From positions 1,392,987 through 1,456,986 of the forward strand of contig NW_018408919.1 in assembly GCF_002113885.1 (NCBI RefSeq): a DNA stretch of 64,000 nt. Direction: 5' to 3'. The translations under genes and the position numbers were made by a program. Origin of the DNA: Mizuhopecten yessoensis. Taxonomy: Eukaryota. This document shows, one piece after another, positions 22,503 through 64,000 of the stretch (positions within the stretch are counted from its first letter, which is position 1; every line of letters begins with the position of its first letter). The notes beneath the pieces were generated by a model. It was given only the letters and a program-made list of their open reading frames with translations, was not told where the DNA came from and did not search any database.

Positions 22503-23907
22503 TGGTATTTTCGTACTACAATCATTAATTAATAGAACTCTCAAAAAACGAAACAGACTTTACTGCTGTTTTATAGATTATATAAAGCTTTTGATTTTGT
22601 TAGTTGACAAAATCTTTGGTATAAAATGATTAAGGAAGGTATAGAAGGGAAATTCCTGAAAATAATAAGAAGTCTCTATGCCAATGTAAAATGTTGTGTT
22701 AAATTCAAAGGTGTTACTGAATTTTTCAAATGTGATAGTGGTTTATTCCAAGGGGAAATATTATCTCCCTTGTTGTTTACATTATTTGTTAACGATTTAG
22801 AAATGGATTTTATAAAAAATAATTGCTTATCACTAAAAATTCAAACTATTAATTTATTTTTAAAGCAGACGATATGGTCATACTATCGGAAACACTAGAA
22901 GACTTGCAGAAAATGTTAGATTCACTATCAGATTATTGTAGAAAATGGAGCTTAACTTTAAATGTAGATATAACAAAAATAGTTATCTTAAGAAATGGTG
23001 GTTTAATAAGGACAAAAGAAAAATGGTTTTATAATAATGATGCGATTGAAGTAGTTGATGAGTTTAATCATCTTGGTCTCACTTTAAACTATAATGGAAA
23101 ATTTACAAACAAAAAACAAAAAAACCTAGCAGAACAAGGTCGAAAAGCACTATTTGCCATAACTAATGCATGTAAAAAGAATTATTTTAATATGGAATCT
23201 CGTCTTGCCGTTTTTGACACGTTTGTAAATAGTATTTTGATGTACGGTTCAGAAATTTTGGGATTTCATAAAGCACCCGAAATAGAAAAATTGCATATTG
23301 GATTTTTGAAATCATTATTAGGATTAAGAAAATCTACGAACACTGCATTTCTTTATATTGAATTTGGAAGATCTCATCTAGAGCTGTAAAGAAAAAGATA
23401 AAAAAAAAGATAAGTATTGGATTAAATTACAACGTTCTGATAACTGTGTGCTGAAAGCTTGTTAATGATGATATGGTTGAAAATAAAGACCCCTGGATCC
23501 TTAACTTAAAACATGATCTTTCAAGAGTTGGCCTTGGATACATGTTTGTGACTGATAGTGTTAATCATTCTAGTGAAGTATATAAGCAGCGATTATGTGA
23601 TAGTTTTCAGCAAGATTGTCTAGAGAAAGTTCATTCTTCTTCTAAAGGAGTATTATATCAGCATTTAGTGGAATGTGTTAAATGCAACTATATATTCATA
23701 AGGCAATTCATTTAAATTATCTAAAACATATTTCTAAGATGCGTTTATGTGCGCATGACCTGTTCATTGAACGTGGCCGTTACAGGGATATACCTAGAGA
23801 AGAAAGAAAATGTATTTAATGTAATGAAAAGGATATAGAAGATGAATTTCATTTTATAATTAAATGTAATCGCTATTCAGACCTCCGGTCTAAATACATA
23901 AAGCAAT

Positions 23908-26900: not shown

Positions 26901-27946
26901 TACTTGGACAAGTGTTAGAATTTTTGGTGCATAAAATTGACTATAGAATCAATTTGATTTCGAATATTTAAAGCATGGATTGCAATGAATGTAATGTAAA
27001 AGTTTGAAATCATACTGTCCTTGAATCTTGAAAAGTTTAAACAAAATTAAAAGTTACAATTGTTGTCATCATTAACTATACATGTATAACTTAACATGTA
27101 CTGACTATTGTTTGTAGCTTTTTATGTTAAAAGCATGTTAAAGTAAACATACATGTACTAGGCTCGGTTGCATCGGTGCCTTTTTCAGACAGCCCAGTTT
27201 TTGGACCTACGCTGAAGAAGCTGTCAATTCTCTTCTGTGCCATATTTCTTGCGTAATTAGAACCTGGAAGAATAAATTGTGGCTCCGTACATGTATGAAA
27301 TCGGAATACTTTTGACCTTTATGCGCTTCCGTAGATGAAAAAAATGACGAGCGTTGTGTTTACCAGAAATGTTTTTTTCATAAAAATTCCATGTATCAAT
27401 ATAACTAATCTACCAAGAAGGAACTATTTCAAAAATGCAGAGTAACTAATACGACAAATGCACCAGAATTTTTCACATTTGCATCATGAATTCACTGATT
27501 AAGGTTGGTTAGTTCAAAATGTTGTCAGTCTCGCTAGAATCGGTTCACAGACATGGTCAAACATGTCATTACTCAACAAACAGACCGAAACAAATAAACA
27601 CTAGGCATACATAGTAACATTTTAGTTATAATTACCTCTTTTCTATCGCTGATTCTGCTGATGACTTTTTTAAGAACTCGATGTAAACATTTGTTTACAT
27701 TTCGAAAATACGGCGCGTGCAAACTTCCGACTTTGAAGAGCTGCAAAGGCCGACAACTTTTCAAAAAAATACTACGGTATGGTGTACGATTTAGGCTATA
27801 TGATTTATAAAGTATTCAGTGTGGTAATTATCAGATCTGGCGAACGCGCTGAATTTCAAACCACATTTTTTTTACTAAAAAAATTTTTTGTTGTCAAAAT
27901 AATGTGGATTCAGCTGCGTACTCGCGTATAGGCAGCTACGCGCCTG
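23908..27946 (-). mobile_element. Apparently autonomous hAT-superfamily DNA transposon, 4039 bp, 5-bp TSD
   Basis: TIR CAGGCGCGTAGCT at 23908 and AGCTACGCGCCTG ending at 27946; GCAAT duplicated at 23903-23907 and 27947-27951. Confidence 0.93.
24120..27243 (-). CDS. hAT transposase (ZMYM1/THAP12-like, TTF-type zinc finger, DUF4371-like region, C-terminal dimerisation domain); 3 exons 27243-27153, 26868-26673, 26154-24120; ~773 aa
   Basis: WLRYS...YCAPC zinc finger, LADEATD, GYDGAS, HCKAH, ETRW, TAERQFS motifs; introns GT-AG with matching phases (1 and 2); no internal stop. Confidence 0.9.
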
Positions 27947-28152
27947 GCAATATTATTTCAAAAGGCCTAGTATGTATAAGTTTGTTCAATTACTCAAAAT
28001 CGAAAACACAAAAGAACTTAATAATTTAAGAAAGTATTCATCACTAGCGTTTAAACGTAGAGCAGATTTATTAAGAGGTCATCAATAGAACAGGTCATGT
28101 TAAGATACATGTTGTATATCAGTTTATTGAATACAAATTATGTAATATACCA

Positions 28153-35700: not shown

Positions 35701-38700
35701 TACTGTAAATAAGACGTAAAACACGAACAAACCAAACTATATACGGCCTTGAGAAGAAGTTAAGTGTGTTTAATTATTATTCAATTGATAAGAAGAGAAA
35801 GTTGAATTTATTGACATCATGAAAAGTGTTTAATAAAGAATAAACAATTCGAACTCTTGATATAAAAGTATAATGCAATTTCATGATATTAGATTAATAT
35901 ATTTCTTGACATTAGAAATTGACTTTGACATCATTAATAAGATATGATGATATCAAGACTGCGAATTCATGATATCTGGAAATAGGCAATAAGTGGTAGG
36001 TGGAAGTCCAAATAGGTCTAAACTACTGTTAAAAGGGGAGGTGCATAAAATAATATTACATATACATATATGTATATGATTTTTTTTTTTGAATAGAGGA
36101 ATACTGGTTAATTGCAAATAAATAACGAGTAAATTCTGTCTTGTGTGAATCCTGTTACTACTCAAAATATTTTTAAAATATTTACTTCCTTTTTTTACAA
36201 GAACCTGAGCGGGAACAAGCTGATGTCACGTGGTCTTCAGGTTATAGTGGAAACCATGCAGAAAAACACATCACTTCTGTCGCTTGATTTGTCCGGTAAA
36301 TGTTTTCTTCTGGTATTTCATACGTTCTGTAAGAGATATAGTCTACCATTCATATATATTAACATTCTTTTTTATTTTGTCAAATAATATGAGTTGAAAT
36401 AGTGTTGATAGAGCTATAGAAGTAGTTTAACGTCCTCGAACTTCTCTCCACCCCTGGGATATGTCATGAAGAAATCGAATGAAGGTTCGCAGTGAGCTTT
36501 TTGAATGATTTAAGGCTTTGAAATTAAACCTGACCAATTGCTAAGCTAAATATTACAGAAGATCCATATCAAATTTTAAAGCCTGCCTGTTTTACCGTTA
36601 CACTGCTGTGATATTCTATTTGATCTTCATGGAAAATCTTAGAGTAATCGATGTTCCATTTATCAACGTATGTCATAAGGAGATGACGTAATAAATATCA
36701 TACTCCGTCAGTAACACTAATCGAATAACTGATAATATTAAACATGTCTGGATTTCGTATTTCCCTTGCATTTGAATGAGAGATGACTATAAAAGACATA
36801 TTACCTGAACCTGAACTCCAGAGTTTTTGTTTGTTACATTCTGATAAATGCATTTGACACTTTGCACCATGCCCAATCCTACATGAGTTTAACAAAACAT
36901 AGCTTTAAATACGTTTACTTTACTTCTAGATAATAGTTTCACAGACAAGGATACCAGCTGTCTGAAAGACCTCTTACTGGTAATGTATTGGCCCATTCGT
37001 TTGTAATTTCCTTGGTAATTGAAGGGATTCAGTTCAACGTTGAATATGTTTGCAAGCTGGCACTGCTTATGCCTTAATTCATGGATACTTAATTATGTTT
37101 ATATTTTTAACTCTCTGCATTGGATTTTTAAGATAATTGCCTCCATACTTCTAATGATTATTTTACAATTGGTGTTATTTGAGAAGCGATAAATAAGCAA
37201 TGTGTGTCATTGTGTGGTCACTGCATGTGCTCAATACATTTTATATATGATGTTGAGTTGGCTCCTTTTCATAATTTTCCCGATCGGCACATGTCGCGTT
37301 TACGTTTACAATTTTGGCTTAGAGATTACTTTTTACATTTTTTTAATTTCAGTCTAGCTGTGTTCTGCGGGAGTTGAACCTGTCGAAGAACGGATTTGAG
37401 GACAGTGGCGGCGTTCTCATCGCCCAAGGACTGGGTAACATCCCTCTTTATATTAACATATCTTATGATGAGCGGGACAATTATCTATAATTTTGTTTGC
37501 ACTACCCTTTGTTAAAGCAATTATTTTCTACATTTTGCCGAATTCACGATATCTAAGAATGACATACAGACTACCGAATCGAAAGTCTTACAAAAGAAAC
37601 CACCACCCTGTCTAAACCACCACACTGTCTAAACCACCACCCTGTCTAAACCACCACACTGTCTAAACCACCACACTGTCTAAACCACAACCCTGTCTAA
37701 ACAACCACACTGTCTAAACCACCACCCTGTATAAACCACCACCCTGTCTAAACCACCACTCTGTCTAAACCACTACCCTGTCTAAACCACACTGTCTAAA
37801 CCACCACCCTGTCTAAACCACCACCCTGTCTAAACCACAACACTGTCTAAACCACCATCCTGTCTAAACCACCACACTGACTAAACCACCACCCTGTCTA
37901 AACCACAACACTGTCTAAACCACCATCCTGTCTAAAACACCACACTGTCTAAACCACCACCCTGTCTTAACCACCACACTGTCTCAACCACCACCCTGTC
38001 TAAACCACCACACTGTCTAAACCACCACACTGTCTAAACCACCATCCTGTCTTAACCACCACACTGTCTAAACCACCACACTGTCTAAACATTGAGACTT
38101 CGGATATTGTGTGAACAACTAATAACGGTTTGTGTACAACATCTGAACAATTACACCATCTTGTCTATAACCCATAGCAAGTGTAAAACACCTGAATCAT
38201 TGGGTACAATATGTATATTTGTATCGAAACACCACATTATAGAATAAACTTACACGAACAATGATAGACCCTCTCTGATAATTCAAGGACTGTGCAGTAG
38301 TACCTGAACAATTACAACACCTTGTCTACCTCTATGGATTGTAGTTATGTCGAAATACGATATGCTCGAGAAATTCTGAGTAAATCTGTACGTGATTTAA
38401 CTTAACGTAGTTTAACATATCTAAATAAATTAAAATAAAAACATCTAATCGGATTCACGTATTTAACCAATTCATTTTTCTTTTCTTGTTTTCAGCTCAA
38501 AATAAAACGATAAAAAAACTGAACCTCAGCTGGAACCATCTGAGAAGAAATGGAGCATATGCCATCGGACAGAGCATAAAGGTAGGTCAAAGGTCATAAG
38601 GTCATAAGGTCACAGCTTTTTTTAAACAACGCAATGTATCCTTTATTCCGCATTGTAGCAGACTGTCCATGTTGTCCAAATGTTTGAGAAATCATTCGAA

Positions 38701-41700
38701 ATAATACGAAATCTAATTTGATGTAAATATATCAATCGAACAAGTTTAGGTTTCTTCTTGTGTTGTCATTGGAACACTTTCATCAGCATTTGTACTGTTA
38801 TAATTCTGGAATAAAGGAGACGTTGATCATGGTGTGGCACATTTTAGAAGTTTGTCTTGAATTACCGACATTCAAACGGGCATTGAAGATGGAGGGTCGG
38901 AAGGAGTTACAAGTGATGGTCACTCTTAATATAAATATGTATATATTAAATATTGTCTGGGGGAACCTAGGAGTAAATCAAATATATTTCATTTCAATGT
39001 TTTATGGTTACATGTATTATTCATAGACACTTGTAGTTTTGAAATCACGAAATAACAAAAATGCTTCAAAAAACGGTTACTAACTTACTAGCATGTTTTT
39101 CATTGGTCTAGACTAACACTAAATTGGAGGTCCTAGATGTTTCATGGAATGGATTTGACGTTCCTGGTTGTCATGGTTTCAGTCAAGGTCTAGATGCTAA
39201 TACGTCACTCCGAGAATTAAACATAAGCTCGAACAGAATTGGACCCAAAGGCGTGGCCAAACTCCTGGAGGGCCTCAAGCGGAACACCACGCTGGCCTGT
39301 CTCAAGGTTGGTGAAAGTATATACAAACTTTACTTAATGACGTACTGAGTTGAACAAAGTGAGCGATAGCCGATGAATATGGCTTTCCTGAGTAAGAAGA
39401 AGCGTCCGTCAATCCGTGCGCAACTTTGCTTTGGGGCTTATGTCATTACTCTGCCACCTACAAACATAACAAAAACATTTTTGGATGTACTAAAATGCCT
39501 CGCTATATGTAGAGTTAGGACCCATTTTCACCGTGCGCCAATTTGTTGGATGTATGAGTAGATGTATCATACCGGTAAAATCTCCACACATTTTGAGGAG
39601 GGGTGTGGAGGGGTGTGTAGGGTGACCTTTGACCTAGATATGCATGGAATGTATGACGCAATAGGGGGGGGGGGCAGATATGCATGGAATGTGTGGAGGG
39701 AGTTTGACCTAGACATGCTTACAGCAAAGAATGTGTGGAGGGGTTTGACCTAGACATGCTTACAGCAAAGAATGTGTGGAAGGAGTTTGACCTAGACATG
39801 CTTACAGCAAAGAATGTGGGGGGGGAGTTAGACCCAGACATGCTTACAGCAAAGAATGTGTGGAGGGAGTTTGAGCAAGACATGCTTACAGCAAAGATTG
39901 TGTGGAGGGAGTTTGACCTAGACATGCTTGGAACGTGAAACGTCACAACAAAGAATGAGTGGAGGGAGTTTGACCTAGACATGCTTGGAACGGGAAACGT
40001 CACAGCAAAGAATGTGTGGAGGGAGTTTGACCTAGACATGCTTGGAACGTGAAACATCACAGCTAAGAATATGTGGAGGGAGTTTGACCTAGATATGCTT
40101 GGAACGTGAAACATCACAGCAAAGAATGTGTGGAGGGAGTTTGACCTAGACATGCTTTTTGTGGAAAGAATGTGTGGAGGGATTTTGACCTAGACATGCT
40201 TACAGCAAAGAATGTGTGGAGGGAGTTTGAACTTGACATGCTTACAGCAGAGAATGTGTGGAGGGAGTTTGACCTAGACATGCTTACAGCAAAGAATGTG
40301 TGGAGGGAGTTTGAACTAGACATGCTTACAGCAGAGAATGTGTGGAGGGAGTTTGACCTAGACATGCTTACAGCAAAGAGTGTGTGTAGGGAGTTTGACC
40401 TAGACATGCTTACAGCAAAGAATGTGTGGAGGGATTTGACCTAGACATGCTTGGAACGTGAAACGTCACAGCAAAGAATGTGTGGAGGGGACATTCAGGA
40501 CTGAACATGCCCACAACAGACGATGATGTAAGGTCTTCCCTTTAATTTTATTGTTAGACTGAACACTTCCCGAATAAAAAGTAGAGCTATCATATGAAGA
40601 AGTCGACTTTCAAAATGTGGAGGTAAAGTTTGTTATTGTAAGAAAAGACATGTTCACAGTAACCCAACTCAGTCAAGCTTTTAAAATGATGTTATCAGCA
40701 AGAAACAATTTTCACACTCCGCTAAACTAAACGCTTTTAATTCATAACTCGATGTATCGCACTAGTGACATTTCAAGAGAAATGTTATAACCTTAAGGTC
40801 TAAACATAGCCAAACATCCAGAGAAAAGTTTATCCCAGCAGCTTAGTAGGTTAACTTTATAGAATTATGAAGAATGAAGAATTATGTGTAAACTTTAACT
40901 TTGTTGATTATTAAATTTGTTAGTTTTGAAACTTTCATTCTGTGTTCATTTTTATTCTCATTTTAGGTAGTGTTGATGCTTCATTGCAACAGGTGTAGTG
41001 GAAGGTGTTCCTCCCTTATTCCTGTTCCATGGTTGACATGAAATATACTTTGCAGTAGAGTATCCTGGTGATAACATCATTTAAATACTTTAACATTCTC
41101 GTGTGATTCATTGTAAAGTTGATTATATTTGATAAATCAAATGACTGTATAGGGAATTGAATCCTAGATTTTTAGCCTAACGTTCTAACCTACTAAGCTG
41201 CTTGGATAAACTTTTCTCTGGATGTTTGGCTATGTTTAGACCTTAAGGTTATAACATTTCTCTTGAAATGTCACTAGTGCGATACATCGAGTTATGAATT
41301 TAAAGCGTTTAGTTTAGCGGAGTGTGAAAATTGTTTCTTGCTGATAACATCATTTTAAAAGCTTGACTGGGTTGGGTTACTGTGAACATGTCTTTTCTTA
41401 CAATAACAAACTTTACCTCCACATTTTGAAAGTCGACTTCTTCATATGATAGTTCTATTTTTAATTCGGGAAGTGTTCAGTCTAACAATAGCATGAACGG
41501 GAAGACCTTACATCATCGTCTGTTGTGGGCATGTTCAGTCCTGAATGTCCCCTCCACACATTCTCTGCTGTGACGTTTCACGTTTCAAGCGTGTCTAGGT
41601 CAAACTCCCTCCACACATTCTTTGCTGTAACCATGTCTAGGTCAAACTCCCTCCACACATTCTTTGCTGTAAGCATGTCTAGGTCAAACTCCCTCCACAC

Positions 41701-44700
41701 TTTCCATGCATATCTGGGTTTTCCCTCCCCTATTGCGTCATACATTCCATGCATATCTAGGTCAAAGGTCACCATCCACACCTCTCCACAAAAAGTGTGG
41801 GGATTTTACCGGTATAATACATCTACTTGTATGTCTAGTATACAATGTTAAAACATCGCCAAATTGTGTAGTGCACTACAAGTCACATGAAATGCTATAA
41901 ACATAACGCTCAAACAATTTATTTACATATTTGTTTCTCCGATACAACTAAGAAACCAAAGTTATTTCGTGGTGTTTTCAGCTTGCTGATAATCCTCTAG
42001 GCCCTAACGGAGCGTTGGCGGTGTTGAACGCTGCAATGAAATCTCACAGCATCGAGGAGCTAGATTTCGGGGTAAGTACGTGCTCATTGATTGGCAGGAA
42101 TCAGTTTTTGTTACCACATGTCTCTTGTTTATGTATGAGACAAACTCCATTCAAGCATTGATAGTTTTAAGAAAAGAAAAAAGAAAAAAGGAAAAAATAG
42201 CAAATAATCAAATAAACATAATGTTTGAAAATAATTATTCAGGACTCGTTTAAGTAGAGTCACTTGTGTTTGTTAGAAGAGTTCCAATAATAAGTTTGCT
42301 TGCTTTCTTTATTAAAGCAAAGCGTTATGTACGAACGAAATCAGGACATCAGATCCTCGGGTCTCTTCGTCATGATATTTCTTATGTTAAGGCTTTCCTC
42401 CAAACTGATTGGATCATTTCAAAATGTTCGTACTCCTTAAAAGAGTCCGCAAAGTATGATTGTCAGTGCAAAGGTTTCGAGAAAAAAGGAATAACTTTAA
42501 GGATCACCGTACTACTGCCCAAAATTTTAACTGTGCAATAAAAACTGATTTTTTTCTGGCATTACTACAGCTTTGATAAATCAATTCTGAAAAGAAAAGC
42601 ATACCTTGCGGGGATAAGGCAATAAAGTCATAAGGCAATCAAACAATGTTTAATCAAAAGTAATATTCTGAGTGTAAAAATTCAGCAGGGCTAGACCGAT
42701 ATTCGAACCCTGGACCTCAGACTGTGATACCATCGCTATACCGAGTGTGCTTCCTAGTCAACGGAAGCATCCTGATCCAACTTTGCTACATAATATCGAA
42801 AAGGAAATTAAGTGGAAGTTTCACCAGGGTGCAGAAGGACAGGGATCCTGAACAGGAAATCCTTTTCAAGGCCATTAAAAGCTGAAAGATTCTTACATAG
42901 CTTAATCAGGCTATAGTCACTTGACCACTGGCTTATGCTTTTTTGATTAAATGACAGCATAATACATATAAAATATAAAAAAAAGCTTAAAACAAAATTT
43001 CTATATGTCAAACTTTCTGAAGGAGAAACGTTAATTGGCTTTTTTCACCTGTAGTTATAAGTGAATGGTATTATTTTTCAGAACCAACCGGTGACGGCGG
43101 AGTTCGAAGACCTTCTAACAAAAATCCAGGCTGGCAGGGATATAAAAGTGCGCTATGGAAAAGAACCATCTAAAGCTAAACGGGAAGTTTGTGATGAAAC
43201 TCTGTACATTGCCGGGAATCCTCTTATTATCCTCTTTGAATTCATTCGTATGAAGAAACTGGACATCCTAAATCTGTTTAAGACCCTCGATGCCGACAGT
43301 AACCATTCTATATCATGGGAAGAATTTAGGATTGGAGTAAAGGTAACATACTGCGCATCCATTGTTTATATTAAGAACTCCCGCTGATGGCATAATGAAC
43401 AACAAATAATTTCCGAAGGGAAAACAAGATTTTTCGGCCTACTGGCCTTCTTCAAGCGCACAAGTCAACGATTCTTTCAAGTAACGTTTATCTTGCTTCC
43501 TTCGGAGAGGAAATGACGTAGAAAAGTATGACGTCACAATGACTCGTTGAATATATGACGTCCTAGGAAAAGTGTGAAACGTAGTTTTTTTACTCCAATA
43601 TAAAACAAAATACGCACAATATCTGCACATTATCAAGTTTGAATAATTACCTGACGTAATGAAACATAAAAAATCTCACAGCGTCTAAAACTATATATCG
43701 ATACCAAAAAGGCAACCGACCCTGTGTTTGTTGATGGGTGTTTTCTTCTCCTTTTAATGAAAGAAAACATTAAACTTCACCAAATTTAACAAAAGTTATC
43801 TGTTGCAAGTTATTCACACAGGTGAATAAATGGCTCAACATGTTGCGTTTTGACATGGTTACATTCAGGAACATATAAACAATAAATGATTTCTGGGAAA
43901 TGTTTGCCTCCATCGGTTATGTCAAATATACTGTCAAATATGCGATTGATTTTATGTTAAAAATTATTAAATCAATCTGATTCAATAAGGTTTGGAAGGT
44001 ATAAATCTGTAGATAAGTTTGAACACTCATATGAAAGAAGTAAAGCTGAAAAAAGTGACCATTTTTGTTCAACAGAATTCTACTATATGTATGAATTTAC
44101 ATATATATATGAATGCATATAATTGGTTAATTAAGCATAATACAACGACAGTGGAATGTGTTGATATTAAATATCAATGAATAGCAAAAACATGTTTAGT
44201 CTTAAATCATTATCACACATGATTGAAATACAATACAATAATAATATTGTTTTTCAATTTACTCATTACTGTACTACATGCGATTGATCATTGTTGAGGT
44301 TAATTATAAAAAGGTGGTATTGCTATGAAAACACTACATGCTATAACAAGCCGTAACACTACATTCAAATGCTTATGAATGTGTTGATACCAGTACATTT
44401 ATAGTACATGTTATAGGTAAAACACGCTGTACTATGTAGTAACTGATATTTACCTTTTTTTGTTAACAGAAAAGCCACATACCTGTCCGGCCAAAAGACC
44501 TTGAACAGATGATTGACAAAATGGACCTTGATAAGGACGGAGAAATAAATTTTAGGTATCTTATTTAGTATCATTTAACTATGATGAGACACCAAAAGAG
44601 CACAGGGTTATTTTTCTAACCAATGCCGGAGTAAACATAATTTTGTTAACCCGAAAGCCTCATATGATCTTTTGAGTATTTGACAACGGCTGAACGTCGA

Positions 44701-48036: not shown

Positions 48037-51000
48037 ATGGATACTATGGAGCTACGACAGGGGTCAGTGATGTCTGATATCACAAGTAAGGCCAAAACAT
48101 CACAGGTGAGTTATAAAATTTCGTTCGTCAAACAGTTGGGTTTCAATAAAGTTCAACAAAAAGGCCAATATTAATCCGTATTGGCATAATAAGGGAACAA
48201 TTCGTGAACATCAGTGTTTTAGTTCCTATAATATGTTTTTCAAAAGAAAATAATTCAATGTTTGATCATACATATTGCTCTATCATATTTGTCCGTATCC
48301 TAATACAATCGCGCTTACTTTTATACTGTAAAACGGGAAATGTTTCGCCTAGTTTTAGTTTCGCATTTTTCCTTCTTCATACTGTGGATAAATTTATCCC
48401 GACAGCGAATATTGTTACACATCATACTTTGTTTAGTCATTACATATGAAGGGCGAAATTAACGTTGTGCGAATACTGATTATGCAAGTGAATGGGCGAA
48501 AGATTCCTGGTATGCAGTATTAATGGTTATGTTTCTGTAGTAAAAACTGAGTTGACCAAAAGATGTTTTACTTTCGCATTTTCTGATTGGCATCTGTTAC
48601 TCCAGGTTATATGGACAAGTTTATGTTAATATGTAATTGAGACGGGTTCATTTACTAAATGAATTTAAAAACTGTTTCCTGGTTACCATACTTTGAGGGC
48701 TTTGAACCTGATTTTCTTCCAGCTTTGGACCTTGCGGTCTGAAGAGTACATCCAGGTGCCTAAGTAATAACCGATAAGGTTACCAACTATTGTGCATGAC
48801 GTTAATATTTTCAAGGGCAACCCCAACAGGCGACAGAGCTTGGCAGTTGATTAAGATGAATAAAAGCAGGGTAACTTGAAAGGCGTCTTGATAATATGAT
48901 TAACTAAAATGTGAATGTCAAGTCTGAGAGGTACAAAACACTGTGAAGACAGTCTTACGCTTATTCGTCACTAGTACTTATTTACATCAGCTTATTTTTA
49001 TTGTTTTATTTGAAATAGTTTTGAGAAAACAAATTGATATTGTGCAACTAACTGTGAATCACGTTGATTTTTACGTTAATTCCGTCATCAAATTAATTCA
49101 CGAATTCAACTTTCCCACAAATATTGAATTTACAGAAAATTGAAATAATGAACCGTCGAATTCAAGTGAATAGTTTACTAAATAAATTAAAAGCGAAAAT
49201 GAATTATTAACAGTATTTCCAAATTATTTGTTTCCTTATTTCTGCTGATTTAATGTAAGCTCGTTCTTGTATACTTATATAAATTTGGGCCAGGAGACAA
49301 CAGAAAGATTTAAATAGTCACAATGGTCCAGGTTATTGGTAAGAATGATGCCGAAGTTAATGTTATGCTCTGAATATCATGACTTCTCTAATAGATGTCG
49401 ACTGCTGACGGACAAACTTACGACACTCAGTTTCAAACGATACATGTTGAAGAAGACCATGGGCAAGTTTAATGGTCGCTATCATGATCTGATAGGGAAA
49501 TATGCAATTTCTTTGTGTGATATGAAAGTCGATGCATAAATTTTGCTCAATAGTTTGCCTTGTGGTTTTGTTGTCACTTCCCAGGTTCTGGGTGTGATGA
49601 CGTGACATGATGAAACAGAAGACTGTTCATTTTAAAGGGTTTCCATGTAAATGTTTTCTTTGTTCATACTTTGCCTTAATTTTATCAATTTTGAGTTAGA
49701 GTTATGGTTTTGTTGGCACTTCGGTATCCACTTATATATTTTTCTTACTTCCAGCCGTTAATCTTCCCGATCACAAGGTAATGGCTATGTCTTTCTGCAT
49801 TTTTTGTATGTCTCTTGAATTCGATTTTTTGTTTCCTCAGTTCTTGCTGTTGTCCTTCCGTGTTGATTTCTTGTCCACATTAAAAGATAGCTAGCTATGT
49901 CAATTTATCTCAAATCAAGGGACAACTTTATCTACCAGGTTTTAATCACCTTCTTTATGTTACTCTGTGTCGTTCTCATTCATGTTTTTTTCTAATATAT
50001 ACAACTCCTGATTATATTACTTCATCGCCTAACGTGGTCTTCCCTGATTATCTTTACTATCTCACTGCGATTACCACTCATAAATATTATTATGTAGAAG
50101 AAGCAAGATGGACATAACTCGAATCAGTCGTTGACTTTCGCGATTGAAGAAGGCCAGGAGGCCGAAGTATTGGGACTTAGAATGACATTTGTTCGGTTAT
50201 TTTTTACATTATTTTGCTAGAGTTAACTAAAAATTGTACTATACCAGAGAGTCTACACAAACGGACAAAATTGGAAATCAAGATCAATGCAAAATATTAT
50301 CGCTAAAATATGTACATTAAAAGTAATACACATTTGTATTAACAAAAAGTCCCCTATCCTCTTGTTTAACGACGCTTGAATTGACAAGGTGCAAAATGTA
50401 AAATGACTTCTGAAAAAAACTGAAACTCAAAAGTAAGTCTGAGGTGCACATCTACATGAGAAATTATTCATTAGTAGAAATTTGCTAAATATGTCCGCAA
50501 GTCTCGAAGAAGTTGCCGAACAAACGTTTCATACAGACGGACGAAGGCACAGGAGAAGGGCGGACAAGTAGACTGCACCTTCGTTTCAAGAGCATGATAA
50601 CATATGCTTAAATTAAAATATATAATTTCATGTTACAGAGGAGGACCTCGATAATGACGAGGAACAACAACAGCACGAGCCTGGCCGCAACAAGTGTCAA
50701 GGCCCAAGCGCTGGCCAATAAGTACCGCCTCTCCAAGACTCCCAGCAAACGAGCTCCACCCACAAAAGTTCTAAGGATAAAGAAACTCAACGAGATGCAC
50801 GCGGCTGGCGGTTTTGATGTTAAAGAAGAGTCACTCGAAAAGGAGAGAATTCGGAAACAATCTCAAAGGACAATTGGTCAGGGGTTGAACTTCGACGAGT
50901 TCGATGATTTTGATTTTGATGGTAAGTAGCTCCCCCCCCTCCTCCTCATTGCGTTCCTGCCGCTTATATTCAAGTTGGTGAATTTAAAACAAAGTCAATG

Positions 51001-54000
51001 AATGACGTTGTAATACATCAATAATAATTTTAAGGATACAACAGGGAAATATCAACTGTAGGATCCCGAAAAAGTTTTTTTTGTGCAACTTTTCCTACAA
51101 AATATTGCAAAGACTTTTGTGTCAGCTATAAATGCAAATATCTTTTGAGGAAATTATCAGATTTTTGCGAAAATTGTCTCGGTATACTGTCATCAACAAA
51201 ACAATCCCTCAAGATGGGATAGGTTGGCAAAAATAATGCATATTCCATGAAGGGAATTTTATCTGATTGGTAGATGGGTTCTGAATGGTATTCATTGAAT
51301 GGATTATCATATAGCAAAGAAACTTGTTTAAGAGATATACAACATAAAACCCTCGCTCAAGCTTGATACCCAGCTAGTATAATAGTATACCTAATATTAG
51401 ACAAGGCTGCTGCGAAGCTGCATTTGCTTCCTTCATTACGGTTTGAAGTTTGCCAAATATTTTTATATATATATCACTTGTATGGCAACCGATATTTATA
51501 TGCATCTCCAATAAACCAATGCATGCCTTCTATTTACTCTATCACAGAGGAAGAGGAGTATTACTATGTTGACAACAGTGATGAAGACGCCAGTCAGAAG
51601 ATCTACACAGATGCATGCAAGGAATTCGGGGCCAAATACATGAAGCTAATTTACAACCAGCTCGTGAAAGAGACATTAAGTTTACTCAGTGTGGTACTTA
51701 GAACCTTGGACAGTAAGGCGTTCGCTACATCCCTAGTGGTAAGTAAGATGTGATTGGTCGATGTGCGAATTCGGTTGCTTAGGAACGTTGGCCGTTTTAA
51801 CCATAGTTTGAAACTCCCTTGTAATATGGGCAATCCAAACCGATGCGATGCATTGAATTCACGATGTCCATTCTGTCAATGAATAAGGATAATGCATTCC
51901 TGCAGTATTGTATGAGGAGCAATATTGCCATATGAGGGAGTGATGGTGCACGTTTTAATAAGCCATAACCTTATATCCTATTATAACGTTTCCACAAAAC
52001 CGACTTTATTTCATTGATTATTATTGTATTTCACAATTTTATAGCATAAATAAAATAATGATTTTCTGTTCACCAGAAAAATTCGTCCATTGACACCTTG
52101 ATTCTGGAGAATAACCGGATTGGGGGTCGAGGGGCGAGATACTTTGCAGAGGTGCTGACTCGGAATACCTATCTCACAGACGTGGTAAGCCAATCAAATC
52201 GCCGGTTACAACGCCGTTACAGGTTTGGGAAAGAAAAGATCTGCTGTAACCCACTGCATGTTTCTGTTAGAGGCGACTAATGTAGAGCCAATATGAGCCG
52301 ATCCCATGCGTACATTGAATTAACACGAGAGAGCTCTTTATACATTGGTTACGCGACTAAAATTTGACAAAAAAATGATATGGTTCAACTATGAAGAAAA
52401 AAGACAATTGAATAAAAAAAAAAACCACAGCATTCACGAGGAAGTGGGCTGTTGTTTATGTTTGCTATAGCGCTTTATTTAATATGATAAACTTACGAAA
52501 AGTCTCAGAAAAAAATAGACCCTTGGTGAGTGTGGTAACAAAAGAGAATATTGTATGTGATAGTGGATATGATAGATATTATTATTTCATGCTTAATATT
52601 AGGTGGAAAGAGCATTCTTCTCTTGTGGATCACAAATTGAGGTTTGGTTTCATCCAAGTTGTGATCCCGTCTGGAGAAATACTTTATCCATCTCGATTGA
52701 TTACGAAAGGGTCTTATCGGCTTATATCTATATTCACCAAAGTAATGTTTTTCGTTTAAGTTAAGTGAATATGACTCAAAGAAATTGTCCTGATTTCTTT
52801 TCTTCAAATATATCAAAACATAATAAGTTACAATGCATTAGAATAGCGATTTCTTTTCCAACAGAAAATCGTCGAGAATCATTTAGGTTCGGAAGGTGCC
52901 GAGGCGATATGTAAAGCACTATGTCACAACAACTACGTAAGACGACTCGATCTATCAGGTAGAAACTTCAATATATATTTAATCTTAGATATTCATCGTC
53001 TGTGGAACATAATGCATGACCGATAATTGATTTTGTTTAAAAACAACTTTGTATAAGAATGGTTAGAAGTCAATACATAAACATGTATTTTACCTTTTTC
53101 CTTTATATATATATATTCATTTCTTATTTAATTGATTATCATTTATCATTAATTTCTTAATAGAAAGTGTATTTTATTATATACCGATATACAACAAAAC
53201 CTCGATATAATGCCCTTCGTTTTTATTTGCCACCTCGTTTACCGCCAAGATATTTCAATGTCCCTTATTCTCTTTTTCCTAAGTATAACGAGGTTTTACT
53301 GTATATTCCATCTTTGTGTATTGCAGAGTTATCTTCTCTTGTGAGCAGGTATTGATTGTTACGTAAAAAATTACGACGTTTTCTCAAAAATTGATGACGT
53401 TACTCTCACAAACAAAGGACGTAACAATCAATACCTGCTCAAAAGAGAAGATAACTCTGCACTACGAAAAGACGGAATTACTGTCTGCTTAATGTTTTAC
53501 AGTAAAGGGTTTTCTAGAAATATATGTCATGTTTTTATTTGACAGGAAATGGTTTCATTGAAGATGATGCACTCTTCTTCAAAGACATGTTAGACGTGAG
53601 TAGAGTAAAGGAGCGTCACTATTTTTTTTTATATGTTTTCCCATATCATTGTCATCTTGTTTCTGCATTTCTCTAATAAGGGTTTAAGTTAGGGATATGG
53701 CAATACGATTTTTGAACGAAATTTTATGGTTACAAAATTTCGCAGTCTGTGATAGATAAACTGGTTTGGAAAAAAATGTATGACATCCAATAAAACAATA
53801 CGAAACAAAATAGTTCTGTCAGACGGTTTTATGGTATTTACTATAACAAATGACTGGTCAAAAAAGGTGTAGGACGGGTGAAGCAACATTTTATTTGAAG
53901 CTGAAAAAAAGAAATGATAAAAATATTATTATTATTATTTATTTATTTTTTAATCACCAACTGCAAAGGATTCAAATATAACAGCAATGTTTCTTTCTGC

Positions 54001-57000
54001 AAGAGGTGGAAACAAAAATGGCTCTAGAATCCTTCAATAAACATTTTTAAAAATTAATTGAACGCATCTTGTAAAGAACATGCTTGTTAATGGGAACTTG
54101 ATCCATTAATAACAAAGTAAAACAAAATCTGTAACATACAAAAAAAGTTCCTTAAATACATCAACCTTTCTGTAAACTAAAGGTAAACCACATAATATCA
54201 AAACACATTGCAATTAAGCAACAATCGTTGGACGCTTCTGACGAACGCGACCTCTGTCGCTGCCGAAGTCTACCCTTATATTATATTTCCATGCATAGAT
54301 ACATGGACTCTATGCCATATATGTGAACAATAAATTAATCAAGTCATAAAATGATATCATTTTCCTGTCTATCCAGGAAAACCACGCCTTACGAGAACTG
54401 TACCTTGGTCACAACGAGTTCCGGGAGAGAGGCGGTGAGGTGTTTGCAGACGGGCTTGGTAGGTGGTCTGTATAAAAATAATAAAAATGCTTTCTCAAAT
54501 TTGATTTATTTTTTGTTTCCTTTTATTTTAAATTGAATTCATGTACTGTAAAGTTCTAATCAACAAGTGGTTAAAGTATAAAGAACAATATTTGAGTGAT
54601 TTTTTTTATAATATTTCACGACACATCTACGTTCAGGTTAATTTGCAATGAAAGATGTTCTCCATGCAAATTATAATTCATTTAAACTTTAGATCGAAGG
54701 CCATTTGTCCTTTCGCGAGACTCATTCTCGCAAGTATGTCGCTGGATGAACAATGGGGAAACTAGCTATCTATAAAAATGAAATTTACATCATGTCGAGT
54801 GTGGTGTGTTAGTTGTGCCATTAAATGTCGTAAATTAGCATATGTTGACGACTCCTCTTCCGTGAAGAACACGTTTCTCCCCCAATAAATCGTTATTTTT
54901 TTTTTACTTTTAATCTCTGATGTTTTCAGATTGGATTCATCCATACATGCGTGTCAGTTGCACGACTAGTTGTCTTTCTTGTGGTTTAATTTCTTTTTTT
55001 ATATATATACTGAAAAACAACATAATCTAACAATACTTTAAAATAATATAAAAAATTCAAAAGGATTATTTTATGTTATAATGTAAGCAGCTTTTACCAA
55101 GATAATTAAGTCTTTTCTAGTGTCTTACATTGATTTAGATAGTAGCTTCATTACACTGTAGGTATGTTGAAACTCTCTTACGAATACAGGTACATGTAAA
55201 TACGTCTCAAACTGAGTGAATTTATGTTCATATTGACTATACCTTATCTTTGGTTTCCATAGCTACGAACGACTTCCTAAGGGTGCTTGATCTTAGTTGG
55301 AACCACCTGCGTATGGCCGGAGCTACAGCAATAGGAAAGGCGCTTCAGGTAGGCGAGAAAATTCTGCAGGAAAGAATTACTGTTCTCTTAGAAAAAGTAA
55401 AGGCGCCTGAAGAGAGACATATGGCACCTAGTGTGATGTCTCCCGTAAACTCCAGAAATATGTGCTGGCCACCAACAATCTACGACACAGCTAATGATGA
55501 TGTCTTTCATTTTTGCCGATATGAAGGATAGTACACTGCACAACTGAAGAGGGTCTATTAAGAAATTTAAATGATATATTTGAACCAAATGTGAAGTTAA
55601 ATTAATTATCGTACAGCTTCTAAACCACGCCCTTTTTACAGGTCAATCGTCATTTAGAAAAGCTGGATATTTCATGGAATGGTTTCCACGTGCGGGGCGC
55701 CATCACAATGAGCAAGGCGCTTGAGACAAATCAAGCTCTCTCGTATCTCGACATAAGCTGCAATCGCCTCACTGACGCTTGTATCACGTGTCTGCTACAA
55801 GGACTGAAGCACAATTCTACGCTGAGAGTCATTCGGGTTCGTATAACCTGTTTGCTGTTTATTACATAGAGACGGGTATTTATATTAACTGTTCCTATAC
55901 TTTCTTTTTGTGTATACATTGATATACATTATTATTTACAAACACGATGTTGTTTATTTGCTGACTACACGCGGCATTTAGTAAGAATGGTGTTCATGCT
56001 GCTTTCCACTTTTTTTTCAGATGGCTAAAAACCCTATGTTCCCGGCCAGTGCCCAAAGGATCCTTGAGTGTGTCCAGGAAAATCCTAACATAGGATTGGA
56101 TCTCATTGACCTCGGAGTCAGTAATATTTTCACTTCATAATCTCAGAGAAAATCTTGTATTGAAAAACAATTGTTTTTGTTTTGAGACATATTTGTGCTT
56201 TGAGAGAAGAGACCATCGTTTTTTTAAAATATTGTGAATATTCATTAGGATATATCTACAGTGGAAAATGTAACTGTTGCTGCTAAAATCGAATAAAAAT
56301 CAAGAAACGTTAAAAATAATTTCAAACATTTTTTTAACCTCATTGTCGTCTTTTGAAACCAGTAAAATACCGTACATATTGGTTTTTGCTTAGTTTTAAA
56401 TTGTTCCTTGCACTTATCTAAAAATTAAGTTTGTTTGATGCAGAAACCTAAACAAAGTAAATAATTACTCTGCCTATATAAACTTGGTTAGTTTTGTGCA
56501 AGAAAAGCTCGCCTCATGCCCTACCTACTTGGTGCGTGATAACCCCTCTTGGTATGTTTGTCTCTTCGTTTCTCTTTCTTCATATCGAGTTTGTGTTCCG
56601 ATGTTTTCTTTTCGTTATTCTGTTTTCGATTATATTTGTCACTTCTTTATGGTCTCTTTGGCTTTATGCTTGAAAGTGATATAAATGCATATCTATAATC
56701 CGCTTGATCAATATGATTAACTGCCACAATCAGTTAGTTGACTTGGATTTATGCACATCATTCCAATTTTGAATTTAACTCATATTTTTATCCCTCACAG
56801 GACCAAAGTGTGACAGAAAAGTTCTACGAGATCCTGTCAGGCCTGAATAAGAAGCGACAAGGGTTCAAGGTGAAATACGGCGTGGTTTGGAAGGCTGACA
56901 GGGAGGTTCTAGGCAAACAGGATGACGATGAGGACGAGGACGATCTCATCAACGAAGACCCTCTTCTCGTCCTTATGGAATATGCGCGCATGGAGAACAT

Positions 57001-57890
57001 TTCACTAGTGGAACTCTTCGTCAAACTCGACAGTGACAAGAGCGGGTCGTTATCACGAGAGGAGTTTATGGACGGTTTGGAGGTACTTATGGCTCTCCTC
57101 CGGAATATACTTTATAGTTATTAAAAATAGCAGCATTATGCGTCTAAAGTTTCAAAGAAATAATTATCACAATAAATATCATATAAATAAAATGAAGAAA
57201 TCACAATTGACCCTGCTGAATATGTTTGAAATCTTTGTGAATTTTCCAAATTGTGAAACAGCCAAACATGAATAAGATTTAAATCTTTCTTTAGCGTCGA
57301 AACATTAGAATATCATGTTAATTGATAATAATACGTCCCGAAAGATATACACTAGCTACTGTATGATGGCAGCAGTGCTATGTATTGGAAACACTGTTTT
57401 TATTTTCAACAGCAAGTCAACATTCCAATGAGGAGAAAAGCTCTGAATAAATTGATCGACAAGATGGACCAGGACGGCGACGGAGAAATTGATTTTGAGT
57501 AATTATACCTGCACACTCTTGTTTATATTAATCTCCTGAATACTACTAGATAACGGAAAATAAAAATCTGCAAAGAGTCGTTTCTATGATCGGATAATAT
57601 AATTCATATCTTATATAAATAATTAAGTCCCAACTATCACATAAACAATGATTTGTATTTTGTCTAAGGTGTAATCTGGTTAGTCGATATTCGTATTGAC
57701 CTCAAAACTGGTCAATGATGATTTTTCTTAAACATCTTTCAGTGAACTGATGAGTGCTCATGACGAACACAAAGACAAGCTCAAAGAGTATTTACAGGGT
57801 GATGTCCCTTTGGAAGAAACGGAAATTGGACGGATTGACAAATCTCTGAGAAATGTCATGAATAAACGGTATATAATGCATAAGTTTTAA
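48037..57890 (+). CDS. LRRC74A-like LRR + two EF-hand protein, paralog 2; firm exons 50639-50921, 51548-51738, 52077-52184, 52865-52958, 53546-53595, 54377-54458, 55263-55348, 55642-55836, 56021-56116, 56801-57082, 57413-57498, 57743-57890; tentative 5' exons 48037-48085/48105, 49755-49777, 50098-50166
   Basis: Phase-consistent exons; YTDACKEFG N-cap, LRRs (LILENNRIG, LDLSGNGF, LDLSWNHLR, LDISWNGF), EF loops DSDKSGSLSREE and DQDGDGEIDFDE; exon sizes 108/94/50/82/86/195/86 are identical to paralog 1. Confidence 0.87.
49340..49539 (+). mobile_element. Penelope-like element RT C-terminal fragment
   Basis: CSEYHDFSNRCRLLTDKLTTLSFKRYMLKKTMGKFNGRYHDLIGKY resembles the post-RT helical region of Penelope-like elements (from recall). 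Confidence 0.6.
53304..53480. mobile_element. Second copy of the palindromic MITE at 32453-32642
   Basis: Shared TATTGCAGAGTTATCT...GTGAGCAGGTATTGATTGTTACGT arms. Confidence 0.85.
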
Positions 57891-58660
57891 TCATTGTCAT
57901 TAGTTTCGCGGACGCTTAAACACTTTTAACCATTAAGCTCATAAGTCTTCATACCGATTGGCGCAACTCCATATGTATAAACTAGACGAAATCATATTAA
58001 AATCACTCAAATTCAACACCTATTAATTTTGTTGTTTTATTCTTTTTTGCTTGATTTCATGTTTGTTGTACAATTTACAACTGCATACCATTAAAACCAC
58101 ATCGAGTCTGCACACTATGTCACGAGTTGATATTCACATCTCAGCCCGAGTTTCCTATGTCTCGCCCTGACACCAGACTCGGCCATTTTAACAGCCCACG
58201 CCAGACATCTATCTGTCAATTGTCTTAGTCTGGTGTAAGGGCCAGAGGAAACTCGGGCTATTCACATCTCTGGAGTAAATTCACGTTAAACATCCTGTAT
58301 TGACACATACTTCAAGAATGCTTGTTTTTGATACTGAAACTTCAATAACACAAAACACTACGTAACGGCCGTCATCACTTAGTGGTTTTTCACAGAAGAA
58401 AGTTTGACTCATTAATCTTTCACAAGAGGGATAGGAGACACATCGGAACAACTCGATGCTACCAGTGTGTGTTTAACTTGCTAAATTGAGGTGAGTTATA
58501 ATCTTGTTTTGATCTTTTGAGTAATGACTCGTTTATTATTAAAAACAAAATTGTATTGTTTTGTTATATTCACTTTCCATCTATTGTAAAATCAATTTCC
58601 GGATATCTCCGATACTTGGAAGACATATCATCTGACGTCATCAAATTCTGTTATCTTTAG

Positions 58661-59021
58661 GTCATATGACAATAGACGGGCATCAACGACCCCTGGTGGG
58701 AAAAGGAGGTTCGCCAATGACATCAATATCGACGACTGGTTCATAAAGGAGCAGGAAAACAACCAAAAACAATTTCGTGATATAATTGCCCGCAATTATC
58801 CTCGTTCAGCGAAAGTGCGAGGCTGGGTCCAGAAATTTCTCGTTGACGAGGTTTCCAACGCTCCCGATTCCTCCACTGACACTAATGCAAACACAGTTGA
58901 CACAACCTCCGAAACAACAAATACCAAAAACGATAATTCTGTCGCTGATGACAACGGAAATGGTAACAGGGAACAAAGTTCTTCGGCTGATAAGCCGCAA
59001 AATCCTAACGTTAATGGTTAA
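58661..59021 (+). CDS. Putative terminal coding exon of unknown affiliation (~119 aa, S/T/N/D-rich tail)
   Basis: TCTTTAG acceptor followed by an open frame SYDNRRASTTPGGKRRFANDINIDDWFIKEQ...NPNVNG*; phase fits a donor at 57868 in LRR paralog 2. Confidence 0.4.
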
Positions 59022-61166: not shown

Positions 61167-62743
61167 CTAGGGAGGAACAGGGTACCAGAGGTTGACCTGA
61201 CGCTGGATGCACAGTGGGAACAGAACCATATGCTTCTCCTCAAATTGATCACAGAATTTCCTCTGCCAGTACAGGTCGTCCTGTGGCAGCTCCTTGGTCA
61301 ACTGGACAGACAACTCCAGTCCATAGCTGAACAGCATCATTGCCTTTGACCGCTCCGTGAAGTTGGCTTTGCTCCTCTTACGAGGTCCGGAGGGCATCCA
61401 TAGGCATTTCATTTTGACTTGACAAGGGGTAGTTCCGCAGTGACGACAGCGGGACGGGCCTGTGCACAAGTAATATATAAGTTACGACAGAGGGACGGGC
61501 ATGTGAATAAGTAATATATAAGTTACGACAGAGGGACGGGCAAATGTACAAGTAATATATAAGTTACGACAGAGGGGCGGGCCTGTGTACAAGTCATATA
61601 TACGTTACGACAGGGGGACGGGCCTGTGTACAAGTAATATATAAGTTACAACAGAGGGACGGGCAGGTGTACAAGTAATATATAAGTTACGACAGAGGGA
61701 CGGGCCTATGTACAAGTAATATACAAGTTATTACAGAGGAACGGGCCACGGTACAAACAGATATATAATTTCTACAGAGGGAAATACCTGTACATGTAGA
61801 TATGTATGTAAAACTGTGAGAATACAATTATATAATTCCAAAATTCGACAAAACCTGTCAGTGATAGTCCGAAAACCCCCAAAAACGATTTTGTAAACAC
61901 TGGTCAAAGCATAAAGACAGAACATTCATTTCCAAACTACTCGATCACATAAAAGATCAAATGAAGACAATACGTCTATCATTATTATCAGAAATATAAC
62001 TCAATTAGTTCATTTGGTCAGCAACTATAGCGAATAATAGAGGATGGTTCTAATTTATAAGGAAATGATTTGACAGTGAATGGATGTTTCGATAGCGAAA
62101 GCCACACAAAAGGTTGTAAAATTGCAATCAATAACATTATTTATTCAGAAGAAAAACATTACTTACGAGCTCTCCATCCTTGGAACATTGACACCATGGC
62201 TGACCATTTCTCTCTGGCGATGTTTCCAATAGACGGCACATAGCCCAACAGCAGGGCTAGAAGCTTACTTAGTAGGATACAGAATACTTCATTTCCTATT
62301 CGCTAAAATAAATTAAATTTTAAATATTTACTGGGGTATTGCACTTACATAAAATATTTCAGACTCGCGAACTACAGACGTTAGATGGACCAAAATGATC
62401 ATAAATGGAGAACATTCTATATTTACCCGTATGAGATCGGCAGGCGCTGGGCATACTTTCTCAATTCCAGATGCGGTGAAATAATGGAACAATCTTGGGG
62501 CATATCCTGGCTCGGGTTCCACGCTGAAAAATTCAAAGACATGATTAAGTGTTTCTAGATTTTCAATGACACTACATAACGCAAACTTGAATTGTCATTT
62601 GCATTGAAATAAGCTCTGTGTGCTGTCCGTATGAAATGTCACAAAACTGCCTTAACTTACCACGCAAGGTCCCGATATACAGCAGGAGCTTGATGCACAG
62701 CGCACAGCATTACCACAAATATCAAGAGTAACCTGATAGTCAT
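61167..62743 (-). CDS. Unknown small spliced gene; exons 62743-62661, 62523-62427, 62295(or 62256)-62167, 61459-61167; reading frame ambiguous
   Basis: Strong donors (GTAAGT, GTAAAT, GTAAGT, GTATGT) and acceptors bound GC-richer blocks; signal-peptide-like MTIRLLLIFVVMLCAV; a Cys-containing 97-codon open exon. Confidence 0.55.
61442..61756. repeat. 41-bp minisatellite, ~7 copies, amplifying a splice acceptor
   Basis: Unit GACAGAGGGACGGGCCTGTGTACAAGTAATATATAAGTTAC; minus strand TTGTACACAG|GCCCGTCCC. Confidence 0.92.
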
Positions 62744-63018
62744 TGTGGTAATCCAAGAATTGTAATACAAATTAAAAATTAGGAGAGAGACTGATCATCT
62801 CCACCTTACAAGTTGCCAGGCAGTTTAGCAACAAAGTCATGACGTCACAAACGGCCTCATTAGTTGAGCATCATGACGTCATACAATTGTGATTGCAACA
62901 AGGTCAAAACTACAATGCTGGAGGCGTGTATGCTTGAAATAGGAGAAATGTTCTGCTATGAATGCTCTCTACTCAGTTTGAAGCTTACATGTACATGTAT
63001 ATGCTAGTAAAATGATAT

Positions 63019-64000
63019 TGTGGTGAATTTCGGGAGAGTTATCTCCCTTGGACCGTGGACCGCGCCGACACGAGATCTCGTGAGCTACGTGATATCATCG
63101 CTGTGACGCGTTGGCGCGGTCTCTTATACTTCTAGATATCGAACCAGCAACACGTGAGTGAATTTCCTCCACCTTGTCTTTGATTTCAGGAGCTGAGAGC
63201 GTTTGCAACTACTTGTTGTGACGGTGTGTGAATAACACACACCGAATTCACGACAATTGGTGTCATAAGTGAGAAAGAACTCACGCTATTCGCGCTATTT
63301 TGACATTTTTTTCCATATATTTTTTTTCTACCTTGCTGGTCCCCTCTCGCTCGCACGTGCGCTGGCCATTTTGTTGACCAGTGCGCGAATTACGAGTGAG
63401 AGATTTTGGGACAGTTCTAGCAGTTTATTATTGTTTATTTAATTATTTATTAGGGGTAATTCAGAGTCGGCGGTGTTTTCACTGCCGTTCTGAAATTTAA
63501 ATTTAATTTAATTTAGTTTACTTGTTAGGTTTTCACGGAACTTCATTCGCCTGTATAGTGGGCCGCCCATATTGGCGGAATACATATGACAGGCGAGACT
63601 TGAGTTATCGTTAGTATAGGATATTATTTTTATATTGTAGGGAAATTATTATATGTTTAGTTAGGTTATTATTACATTAGGTTAGAAATTAGTTATTTTA
63701 GGAATTAGAAATTATTTTGTAAACTGTAAATCGTAGTTGTAATCGTTGGAATTTTGTACGGGACGGTGGCACGTGTCTACTATAGCACTGTTGATATAAG
63801 TCCCTGTACATAATTGTGTAATTGTTTAATTAAGTGTGTTGACTTATTTCTTTCTTGGAACTTTATATTTTGTCATGGCTGTCATAAATATACGGACAGC
63901 TACAGAAAATGAGCTGTGCACGTTGGAGGGTTTAGGCCCCGCGACGGCACAGAAAATCTTGAGTATAAGAGATGATGAGGGGCTCACTCTGCAGAAACTG
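63019..64000 (+). mobile_element. 5' end of an LTR retrotransposon (Gypsy-like): LTR 63019-63255, tRNA-Leu-like PBS 63258-63275
   Basis: LTR starts TGTGGTGAATT and ends AATTCACGACA (inverted termini TG..CA), followed by TGGTGTCATAAGTG, close to the tRNA-Leu PBS TGGTGTCAGAAGTG. Confidence 0.8.
63875..64000 (+). CDS. Start of retrotransposon ORF1 with a ComEA-like helix-hairpin-helix domain (truncated by window end)
   Basis: GTCATGG start; MAVINIRTATENELCTLEGLGPATAQKILSIRDDEGLTLQKL matches the pattern ININTAxxxELxxLxGIGxxxAxxIxxxR. Confidence 0.72.
   Translation, partial: MAVINIRTATENELCTLEGLGPATAQKILSIRDDEGLTLQKL

Follow-up and report, generated by a model that had tools for sequence, protein, structure and literature searches.

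Extra domains in retrotransposons with long terminal repeats (LTRs), such as chromodomains, env or an additional ribonuclease H (RNase H), usually reveal targeting or self-protection. Among the chromatin tethers of retroelements are p12 of murine leukemia virus (MLV), the chromatin-binding sequence of foamy-virus Gag and the integrase chromodomain of chromoviruses, and LEDGF is also used by retroviruses. The tandem helix-hairpin-helix domains, (HhH)2, of ComEA, KIF22 and EEPD1 contact the phosphate backbone of double-stranded DNA with no sequence preference. Orchid Ty3/Gypsy elements have acquired an m6A demethylase domain, and the fixation of such a domain has been called a rare event (PMC9289625). 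In bivalves, Steamer and neighbouring C-clade Gypsy elements carry a 12-bp leucine-tRNA primer-binding site (PBS), TGGTGTCAGAAG, directly after the 5' LTR, from which some families deviate by one or two substitutions, and the phylogeny of reverse transcriptase (RT) and RNase H is the only reliable criterion for placement in the C-clade (PMC8905726). Here, we describe the last kilobase of a 64,000-nt stretch of the genome of the Yesso scallop, Mizuhopecten yessoensis (hereafter the window), together with the DNA that follows it, and find what is very likely the 5' part of a Ty3/gypsy LTR retrotransposon in which an HhH module is fused in frame to Gag and Pol.

The window belongs to contig NEDP02005592.1 of assembly GCA_002113885.2, on which the contig coordinate equals the window coordinate plus 1,392,986. 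The original prediction, made from the letters of the window alone, had placed at 63019-64000 a 237-bp LTR with TG..CA ends, a tRNA-Leu-like PBS, a leader of about 600 nt and an open reading frame (ORF) that runs from 63875 to the window end and opens with a ComEA-type HhH motif; it had read the whole as a Gypsy-like element with an HhH-Gag fusion. We confirmed all four elements at 63019-64000, at the coordinates given below and, where a strand applies, on the forward strand. The same contig was read 5 kb past the window end through locus L165, reached from OWF37294.1, which extends from window position 38037 to window-equivalent 69021 (contig 1,462,007; adding 38036 to an L165 coordinate gives the window coordinate). 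L165 agrees with the window at every one of the 25,964 bases that they share, and it is free of N. The frame that starts with the ATG at 63875 (L165:25839-30983), preceded 15 codons upstream by an in-frame stop at 63827-63829, is open to 64000 and, translated past the window, meets no early stop: it spans at least 1715 open codons and is still open where the locus ends. Along this one continuous frame follow the HhH module, a Gag-like region, a protease, an RT and an RNase H, and the fusion that had been proposed is thereby borne out.

The 5' LTR occupies 63019-63255 (237 bp, 50% GC) and has the predicted TG..CA termini. Its ends are inverted, TGTGGTGAATT matching the reverse complement of AATTCACGACA at 10 of 11 bases, with 77% matching across 26 nt. 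A loose signature built on these traits (10/11 inverted repeat, TG..CA and a TGG within 4 nt) has 11 occurrences in the window where Markov shuffles give 9.7, which is chance level. A strict version that also asked for at least 18 of 24 terminal matches occurs a single time in the window, at the 63019 LTR, where 0.16 would be expected. Because one LTR is in view, we only infer that the 237-bp unit is a repeat. Read directly, the five bases before it, GATAT (63014-63018), are a candidate half of a target-site duplication. Further out, 140-180 bp upstream of the LTR, TCATGACGTCA occurs twice without mismatch (62837-62847 and 62871-62881), the copies lying 34 bp apart and each containing the palindrome TGACGTCA, which resembles a cAMP response element (CRE); the pair may be a host promoter element and falls outside the retrotransposon as delimited here. 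The LTR, the PBS and a 41-nt tandem repeat are also covered by an annotated minus-strand model of 202 amino acids (aa) without a Pfam hit (61167-63369). This model, whose first exon begins at 63369 within the PBS/leader and then crosses the LTR, is probably a spurious prediction.

The PBS, TGGTGTCATAAGTGAG (63258-63273), begins 2 nt past the CA of the LTR and is of the tRNA-Leu type that had been predicted. A 16-mer complementary to the 3' end of tRNA-Leu(CAA), used as a lead only, has one match in the window with up to two mismatches, exactly at 63258, where 0.03 would be expected. The site also agrees with the published TGGTGTCAGAAG at 11 of 12 bases, and this evidence is independent of the LTR signature. 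A search for tRNA genes came up empty for the window and for the scallop loci L161-L164. Rfam returned no tRNA signal for the PBS region, as expected of a 16-nt fragment, and nothing that reached the gathering score for the whole window.

Between the LTR and the ORF lies a leader, or 5' untranslated region (UTR), of 619 nt (63256-63874), in good agreement with the estimate of about 600 nt. It is AT-rich (35% GC) and closed in all three frames, and it holds 2 ATGs against about 13 expected, a count of two or fewer being reached in none of 5000 shuffles. This depletion of ATGs up to 63875 fits a 5' UTR that is scanned to that ATG. Exact look-ups of a small ORF within the leader and of XP_021339089.1 gave no match.

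The first 42 codons of the gag-pol ORF (63875-64000) cover the first HhH motif and reach into the second. Both Pfam profiles for the fold are matched by these 42 residues above cut-off, HHH with 34.9 bits (cut-off 24) and HHH_3 with 33.1 bits (cut-off 27); their best NCBIfam matches are comEA, and their best Protein Data Bank (PDB) matches are ComEA and EEPD1. On the extended ORF the two profiles cover aa 4-51, again above cut-off. The (HhH)2 domain is complete at aa 1-62: both hairpins, the second of which reads VSRVG, align with those of 45 bacterial ComEA domains and retain the conserved Gly and Ile positions. AlphaFold2 run on the ComEA alignment returned four helices in (HhH)2 order with a mean predicted local distance difference test (pLDDT) of 87, and of 83-95 over aa 1-60. 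The closest structures by Foldseek are those of ComEA (8dss and 2duy; probability 1.0, root-mean-square deviation 1.9-2.5 Å over 62-63 columns); Tex, XPF and the C-terminal domain of KIF22 rank next. The E-values are weak, as is expected when a 60-residue domain is queried along with a long helix. The ComEA-type opening of the ORF that had been read from the letters is therefore supported by profile, family and structure comparisons alike. The long helix itself, about 50 residues at aa 83-131, is modelled as single and unbroken with pLDDT above 95 and is most simply taken as a coiled coil.

After this helix the protein continues with about 340 residues of low complexity (aa 136-470) that have no Pfam hit and end in a strongly basic and then an acidic section. 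They are followed at aa 472-595 by a Retrotrans_gag/PNMA-like region. When the Gag piece was scanned alone, Retrotrans_gag (aa 508-595) reached an E-value of 1e-4 (22.9 bits against a cut-off of 24.1) and PNMA one of 4e-4 (20.2 bits), matches just under cut-off that are suggestive of a capsid-like Gag domain there. Between this putative capsid and the protease lies a basic region rich in Arg, Gly, Pro and Ser (aa 641-870, L165:27759-28448), which carries a net charge of +11 and contains a duplicated motif of about 12 residues. A motif search found no CCHC zinc knuckle anywhere in Gag. The original prediction had named capsid and zinc-knuckle profiles as a check on the ORF, and they gave capsid matches that stop just short of threshold and no zinc knuckle.

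In Pol, the aspartic protease (gag-asp_proteas, aa 879-975), the RT (RVT_1, aa 1209-1366) and the RNase H (RT_RNaseH, aa 1432-1560) are all above the Pfam cut-offs. The RT carries YLDD, a DAS motif is also present, and RT and RNase H align with the Ty3 structures 7q5b and 4ol8 over 410 residues with an E-value of 5e-78. Since no rve/integrase hit was found by Pfam between protease and RT, a Copia-like order is excluded and the order is Gypsy-like. Of the gag and pol that were looked for downstream, pol is hence present in Ty3/gypsy order as far as RNase H, and the capsid part of Gag stays below cut-off. Past RNase H, after a Cys-rich patch and ahead of any integrase signature, an acidic insert of more than 100 residues follows; the stretch at aa 1581-1715 (L165:30579-30983) is of low complexity and has no Pfam hit.

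By architecture and PBS the closest described counterparts are Steamer and the C-clade Ty3/gypsy elements (PMC8905726, PMC11046912). They share with the scallop element a bivalve host, a tRNA-Leu PBS after the 5' LTR (11 of 12 bases here) and the order protease-RT-RNase H, and in both the LTR is short and starts with TGT, measuring 153-219 bp in Steamer and the C-clade and 237 bp in the scallop (PMC8905726, PMC11046912). In size, LTR start and zinc fingers, however, the scallop element resembles the Steamer-like ones in no respect: Steamer-type elements are 4.5-4.9 kb long, whereas this one is already at least 6 kb long before its integrase is counted; LTRs of the former open with TGTAACA and that of the latter with TGTGGTG; and their Gag has nucleocapsid zinc fingers only, while the scallop Gag has none and opens with (HhH)2 and the putative coiled coil. 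Yeast Ty3, the type element of the Metaviridae, has in common with the element a similar RT/RNase H, the order of protease, RT and RNase H and a Retrotrans_gag-type capsid (a sub-threshold match in the scallop), but encodes GAG3 and POL3 in separate frames, has a CCHC nucleocapsid and carries no N-terminal DNA-binding domain.

For the module itself, the best match in both sequence and fold is the C-terminal (HhH)2 of bacterial ComEA (Pfam HHH_3; 8dss, 8dfk, 2duy), with both hairpins kept and an identity of at most 45% over 67 residues. In ComEA, a DNA receptor that is membrane-anchored or periplasmic, the domain is C-terminal, whereas in the scallop the domain stands at the N-terminus of a eukaryotic retroelement polyprotein. 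KIF22 (Kid) and EEPD1 (2edu, 9yi2) have the same type of domain and bind DNA or chromosomes non-specifically, but neither the kinesin motor of the one nor the EEP nuclease of the other was found in the scallop ORF by Pfam. Bacterial ComEA and human EEPD1 score alike against the domain of the element, and on these scores its source could be a host gene or bacteria.

Searches for relatives of the N-terminus met the bacterial domain again and again. The visible residues (42/57), compared by phmmer with 1.84 billion representatives and through a word-indexed search, found either bacterial ComEA-like proteins of at most 63% identity or nothing, and the same was true against viral, metagenome and genome contigs. 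The ten longest matches to these residues consist of bacterial domain sets only, and an alignment query combining the 42 residues with a long bacterial HhH protein brought bacterial matches only. Viral contigs gave no match to the LTR/PBS DNA, to the Gag part or to the RT part. In a full-text search of the literature, nothing relevant paired helix-hairpin-helix with retrotransposon Gag, with ORF1 or a polyprotein, or with Gypsy; the single match, on the Cer1 CERV, applies the term to a different fold element in an unrelated structural use and was set aside.

Taken together, we consider a Ty3/gypsy element with an N-terminal (HhH)2, whose likely role is to hold double-stranded DNA, to be the probable best explanation of the locus. 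Several observations nevertheless weigh against it. The sequence covered ends within pol at window-equivalent 69021, before an integrase, a polypurine tract, a 3' LTR and a target-site duplication. A second copy is absent from the window, from 88 kb of other scallop loci and from the orthologous locus of Pecten maximus (L166); as a test for an empty site, the exons of that locus align to the window up to 58.9 kb and the intergenic DNA does not. With one copy seen, the HhH may be a feature of the whole family or of this copy. No protein sharing the N-terminus was found in large protein libraries, although this blank is weak because of length limits and the flood of bacterial ComEA matches. The capsid assignment depends on sub-threshold Pfam matches, and a single-sequence AlphaFold2 model of the region, at pLDDT 43, is too poor to use. 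The protease motif at residue 894 reads DTAA and not D[ST]G. Finally, the role of the HhH is predicted, and the domain could bind something other than chromatin.

How might such a module serve the element? The (HhH)2 would grip the backbone of double-stranded DNA irrespective of sequence, and the adjoining coiled coil would make it multivalent and so multiply its DNA contacts. Because the protein is translated from the full-length RNA, the module would sit on every Gag or Gag-Pol molecule in the particle. Its most likely role would be to hold double-stranded DNA, and two options can be pictured: the particle or pre-integration complex could be tethered to host chromatin, as is done by other means by MLV p12 or foamy-virus Gag, or newly made complementary DNA (cDNA) could be coated by the module. 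A possible analogy exists to p12, foamy-virus Gag and the chromodomain, in each of which a module borne by Gag or Pol holds the integration complex on chromatin; these known tethers are short peptide motifs or a chromodomain that reads nucleosomes or histone marks, whereas the scallop module would be a folded binder of the DNA backbone. We put forward a double-stranded-DNA- or chromatin-binding role in the life cycle of the element tentatively, at somewhat less than an even chance. A more specific scenario, in which a bivalve Ty3/gypsy lineage swapped its zinc-knuckle Gag for an oligomerising ComEA-type clamp, of bacterial or KIF22/EEPD1 source, that fastens the particle or integration complex to chromosomes, is doubtful.

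An alternative to chromatin as the partner is the nucleic acid of the element itself. The HhH, the coiled coil and the Arg/Gly-rich stretch could together replace the zinc-knuckle nucleocapsid and act in packaging, in chaperoning reverse transcription or in shielding cDNA. HhH domains in general bind nucleic-acid backbones, the Gag is devoid of CCHC motifs, and the basic Arg/Gly/Pro-rich region with its net charge of +11 is placed between capsid and protease; Steamer-like relatives, moreover, do carry nucleocapsid zinc fingers (PMC11046912). Domains of the ComEA-type (HhH)2 kind are, however, binders of double-stranded DNA and not RNA chaperones, and the module is found at the far N-terminus, which is the targeting and tethering end of retroviral Gag, rather than next to the C-terminus of the capsid where nucleocapsid lies. 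We regard a replacement of the nucleocapsid as rather unlikely.

The module might also have no part in retrotransposition at all, being a host or bacterial HhH exon that was captured in frame by one copy or by a very young sub-lineage. A single copy has been observed, no eukaryotic relative of the N-terminus appeared in any of the protein or contig searches made, and some 340 low-complexity residues separate the HhH module from the capsid domain, all as a passenger would predict. Yet the module is placed between PBS and Gag, and it is the module's own ATG that initiates an ORF of at least 1715 codons, intact in all other respects; the leader is cleared of upstream ATGs up to exactly 63875. The two hairpins are preserved, as are the conserved Gly and Ile positions, and the structure model is confident. 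For a captured exon without function we see little probability. It is extremely improbable that the ORF belongs to a host HhH gene (KIF22-like or EEPD1-like) as one of its exons and that the LTR-like unit is a product of chance or a short inverted-repeat element. A loose LTR signature at chance frequency, short inverted-repeat structures abundant in the genome and a 202-aa minus-strand gene model annotated over 61167-63369 speak for this reading. Against it, the eukaryotic, intron-aware annotation of the assembly has no gene over the 63875 ORF, whose stop-free frame runs from the HhH through Gag and straight into protease, RT and RNase H, without a kinesin or EEP nuclease domain by Pfam, and the site at 63019 is picked out both by the strict LTR signature and by the PBS.

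The rest of the window holds host genes, a DNA transposon and many tandem repeats. Two tandem LRRC74B-like genes with leucine-rich repeats and EF-hands lie on the plus strand at 20876-45025 and 48037-59021 and encode 583 and 702 aa in GenBank; an EF-hand exon is located at about 57.0 kb, and Pecten maximus (L166) has the same tandem pair. To the left of 16949, the minus strand carries a RanGAP1-like gene. A hAT-type transposon (23899-27951) sits within an intron of an LRRC74B-like gene; the domains encoded by its minus-strand ORF (24120-26255) are DUF4371, FAM200-ZBED5 RNase-like and hAT dimerisation. Four places in the genome encode this 711-aa transposase without a difference, in elements whose DNA is 99.4-99.8% identical over about 4 kb, suggesting that the hAT transposon was active very recently. 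The 41-nt tandem repeat at 61439-61782 (8.4 copies, 86% match) yields a series of similar short minus-strand ORFs. A 42-nt tandem array at 39687-40452 and its reverse complement at 41592-41704, 1.1 kb apart, form a large inverted structure that is the source of most inverted-repeat matches in the window, and 11135-12024, 12458-12974 and 37597-38090 are likewise long tandem arrays, whose periods are 34, 52 and 17 nt.

The backbone of the scallop element is that of an ordinary Ty3/gypsy retrotransposon, and its accessory domain is unusual, one that we have not found described for such elements. The orchid elements offer another instance of an extra domain fixed in an LTR retrotransposon, with a different domain, in a different host kingdom and at a different position in the element (PMC9289625). 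An N-terminal (HhH)2 and coiled coil in a Gag that is free of zinc knuckles would be a new accessory module and suggests a different way of holding DNA or chromatin. The visible part of the copy is intact, so the HhH domain is open to direct expression and testing. If the module does fasten the element to chromosomes, it would be a new solution to chromatin tethering, based on the DNA backbone. In any case, a domain of the ComEA type, familiar mainly from DNA uptake in bacteria, has here been recruited by a mobile element of an animal.
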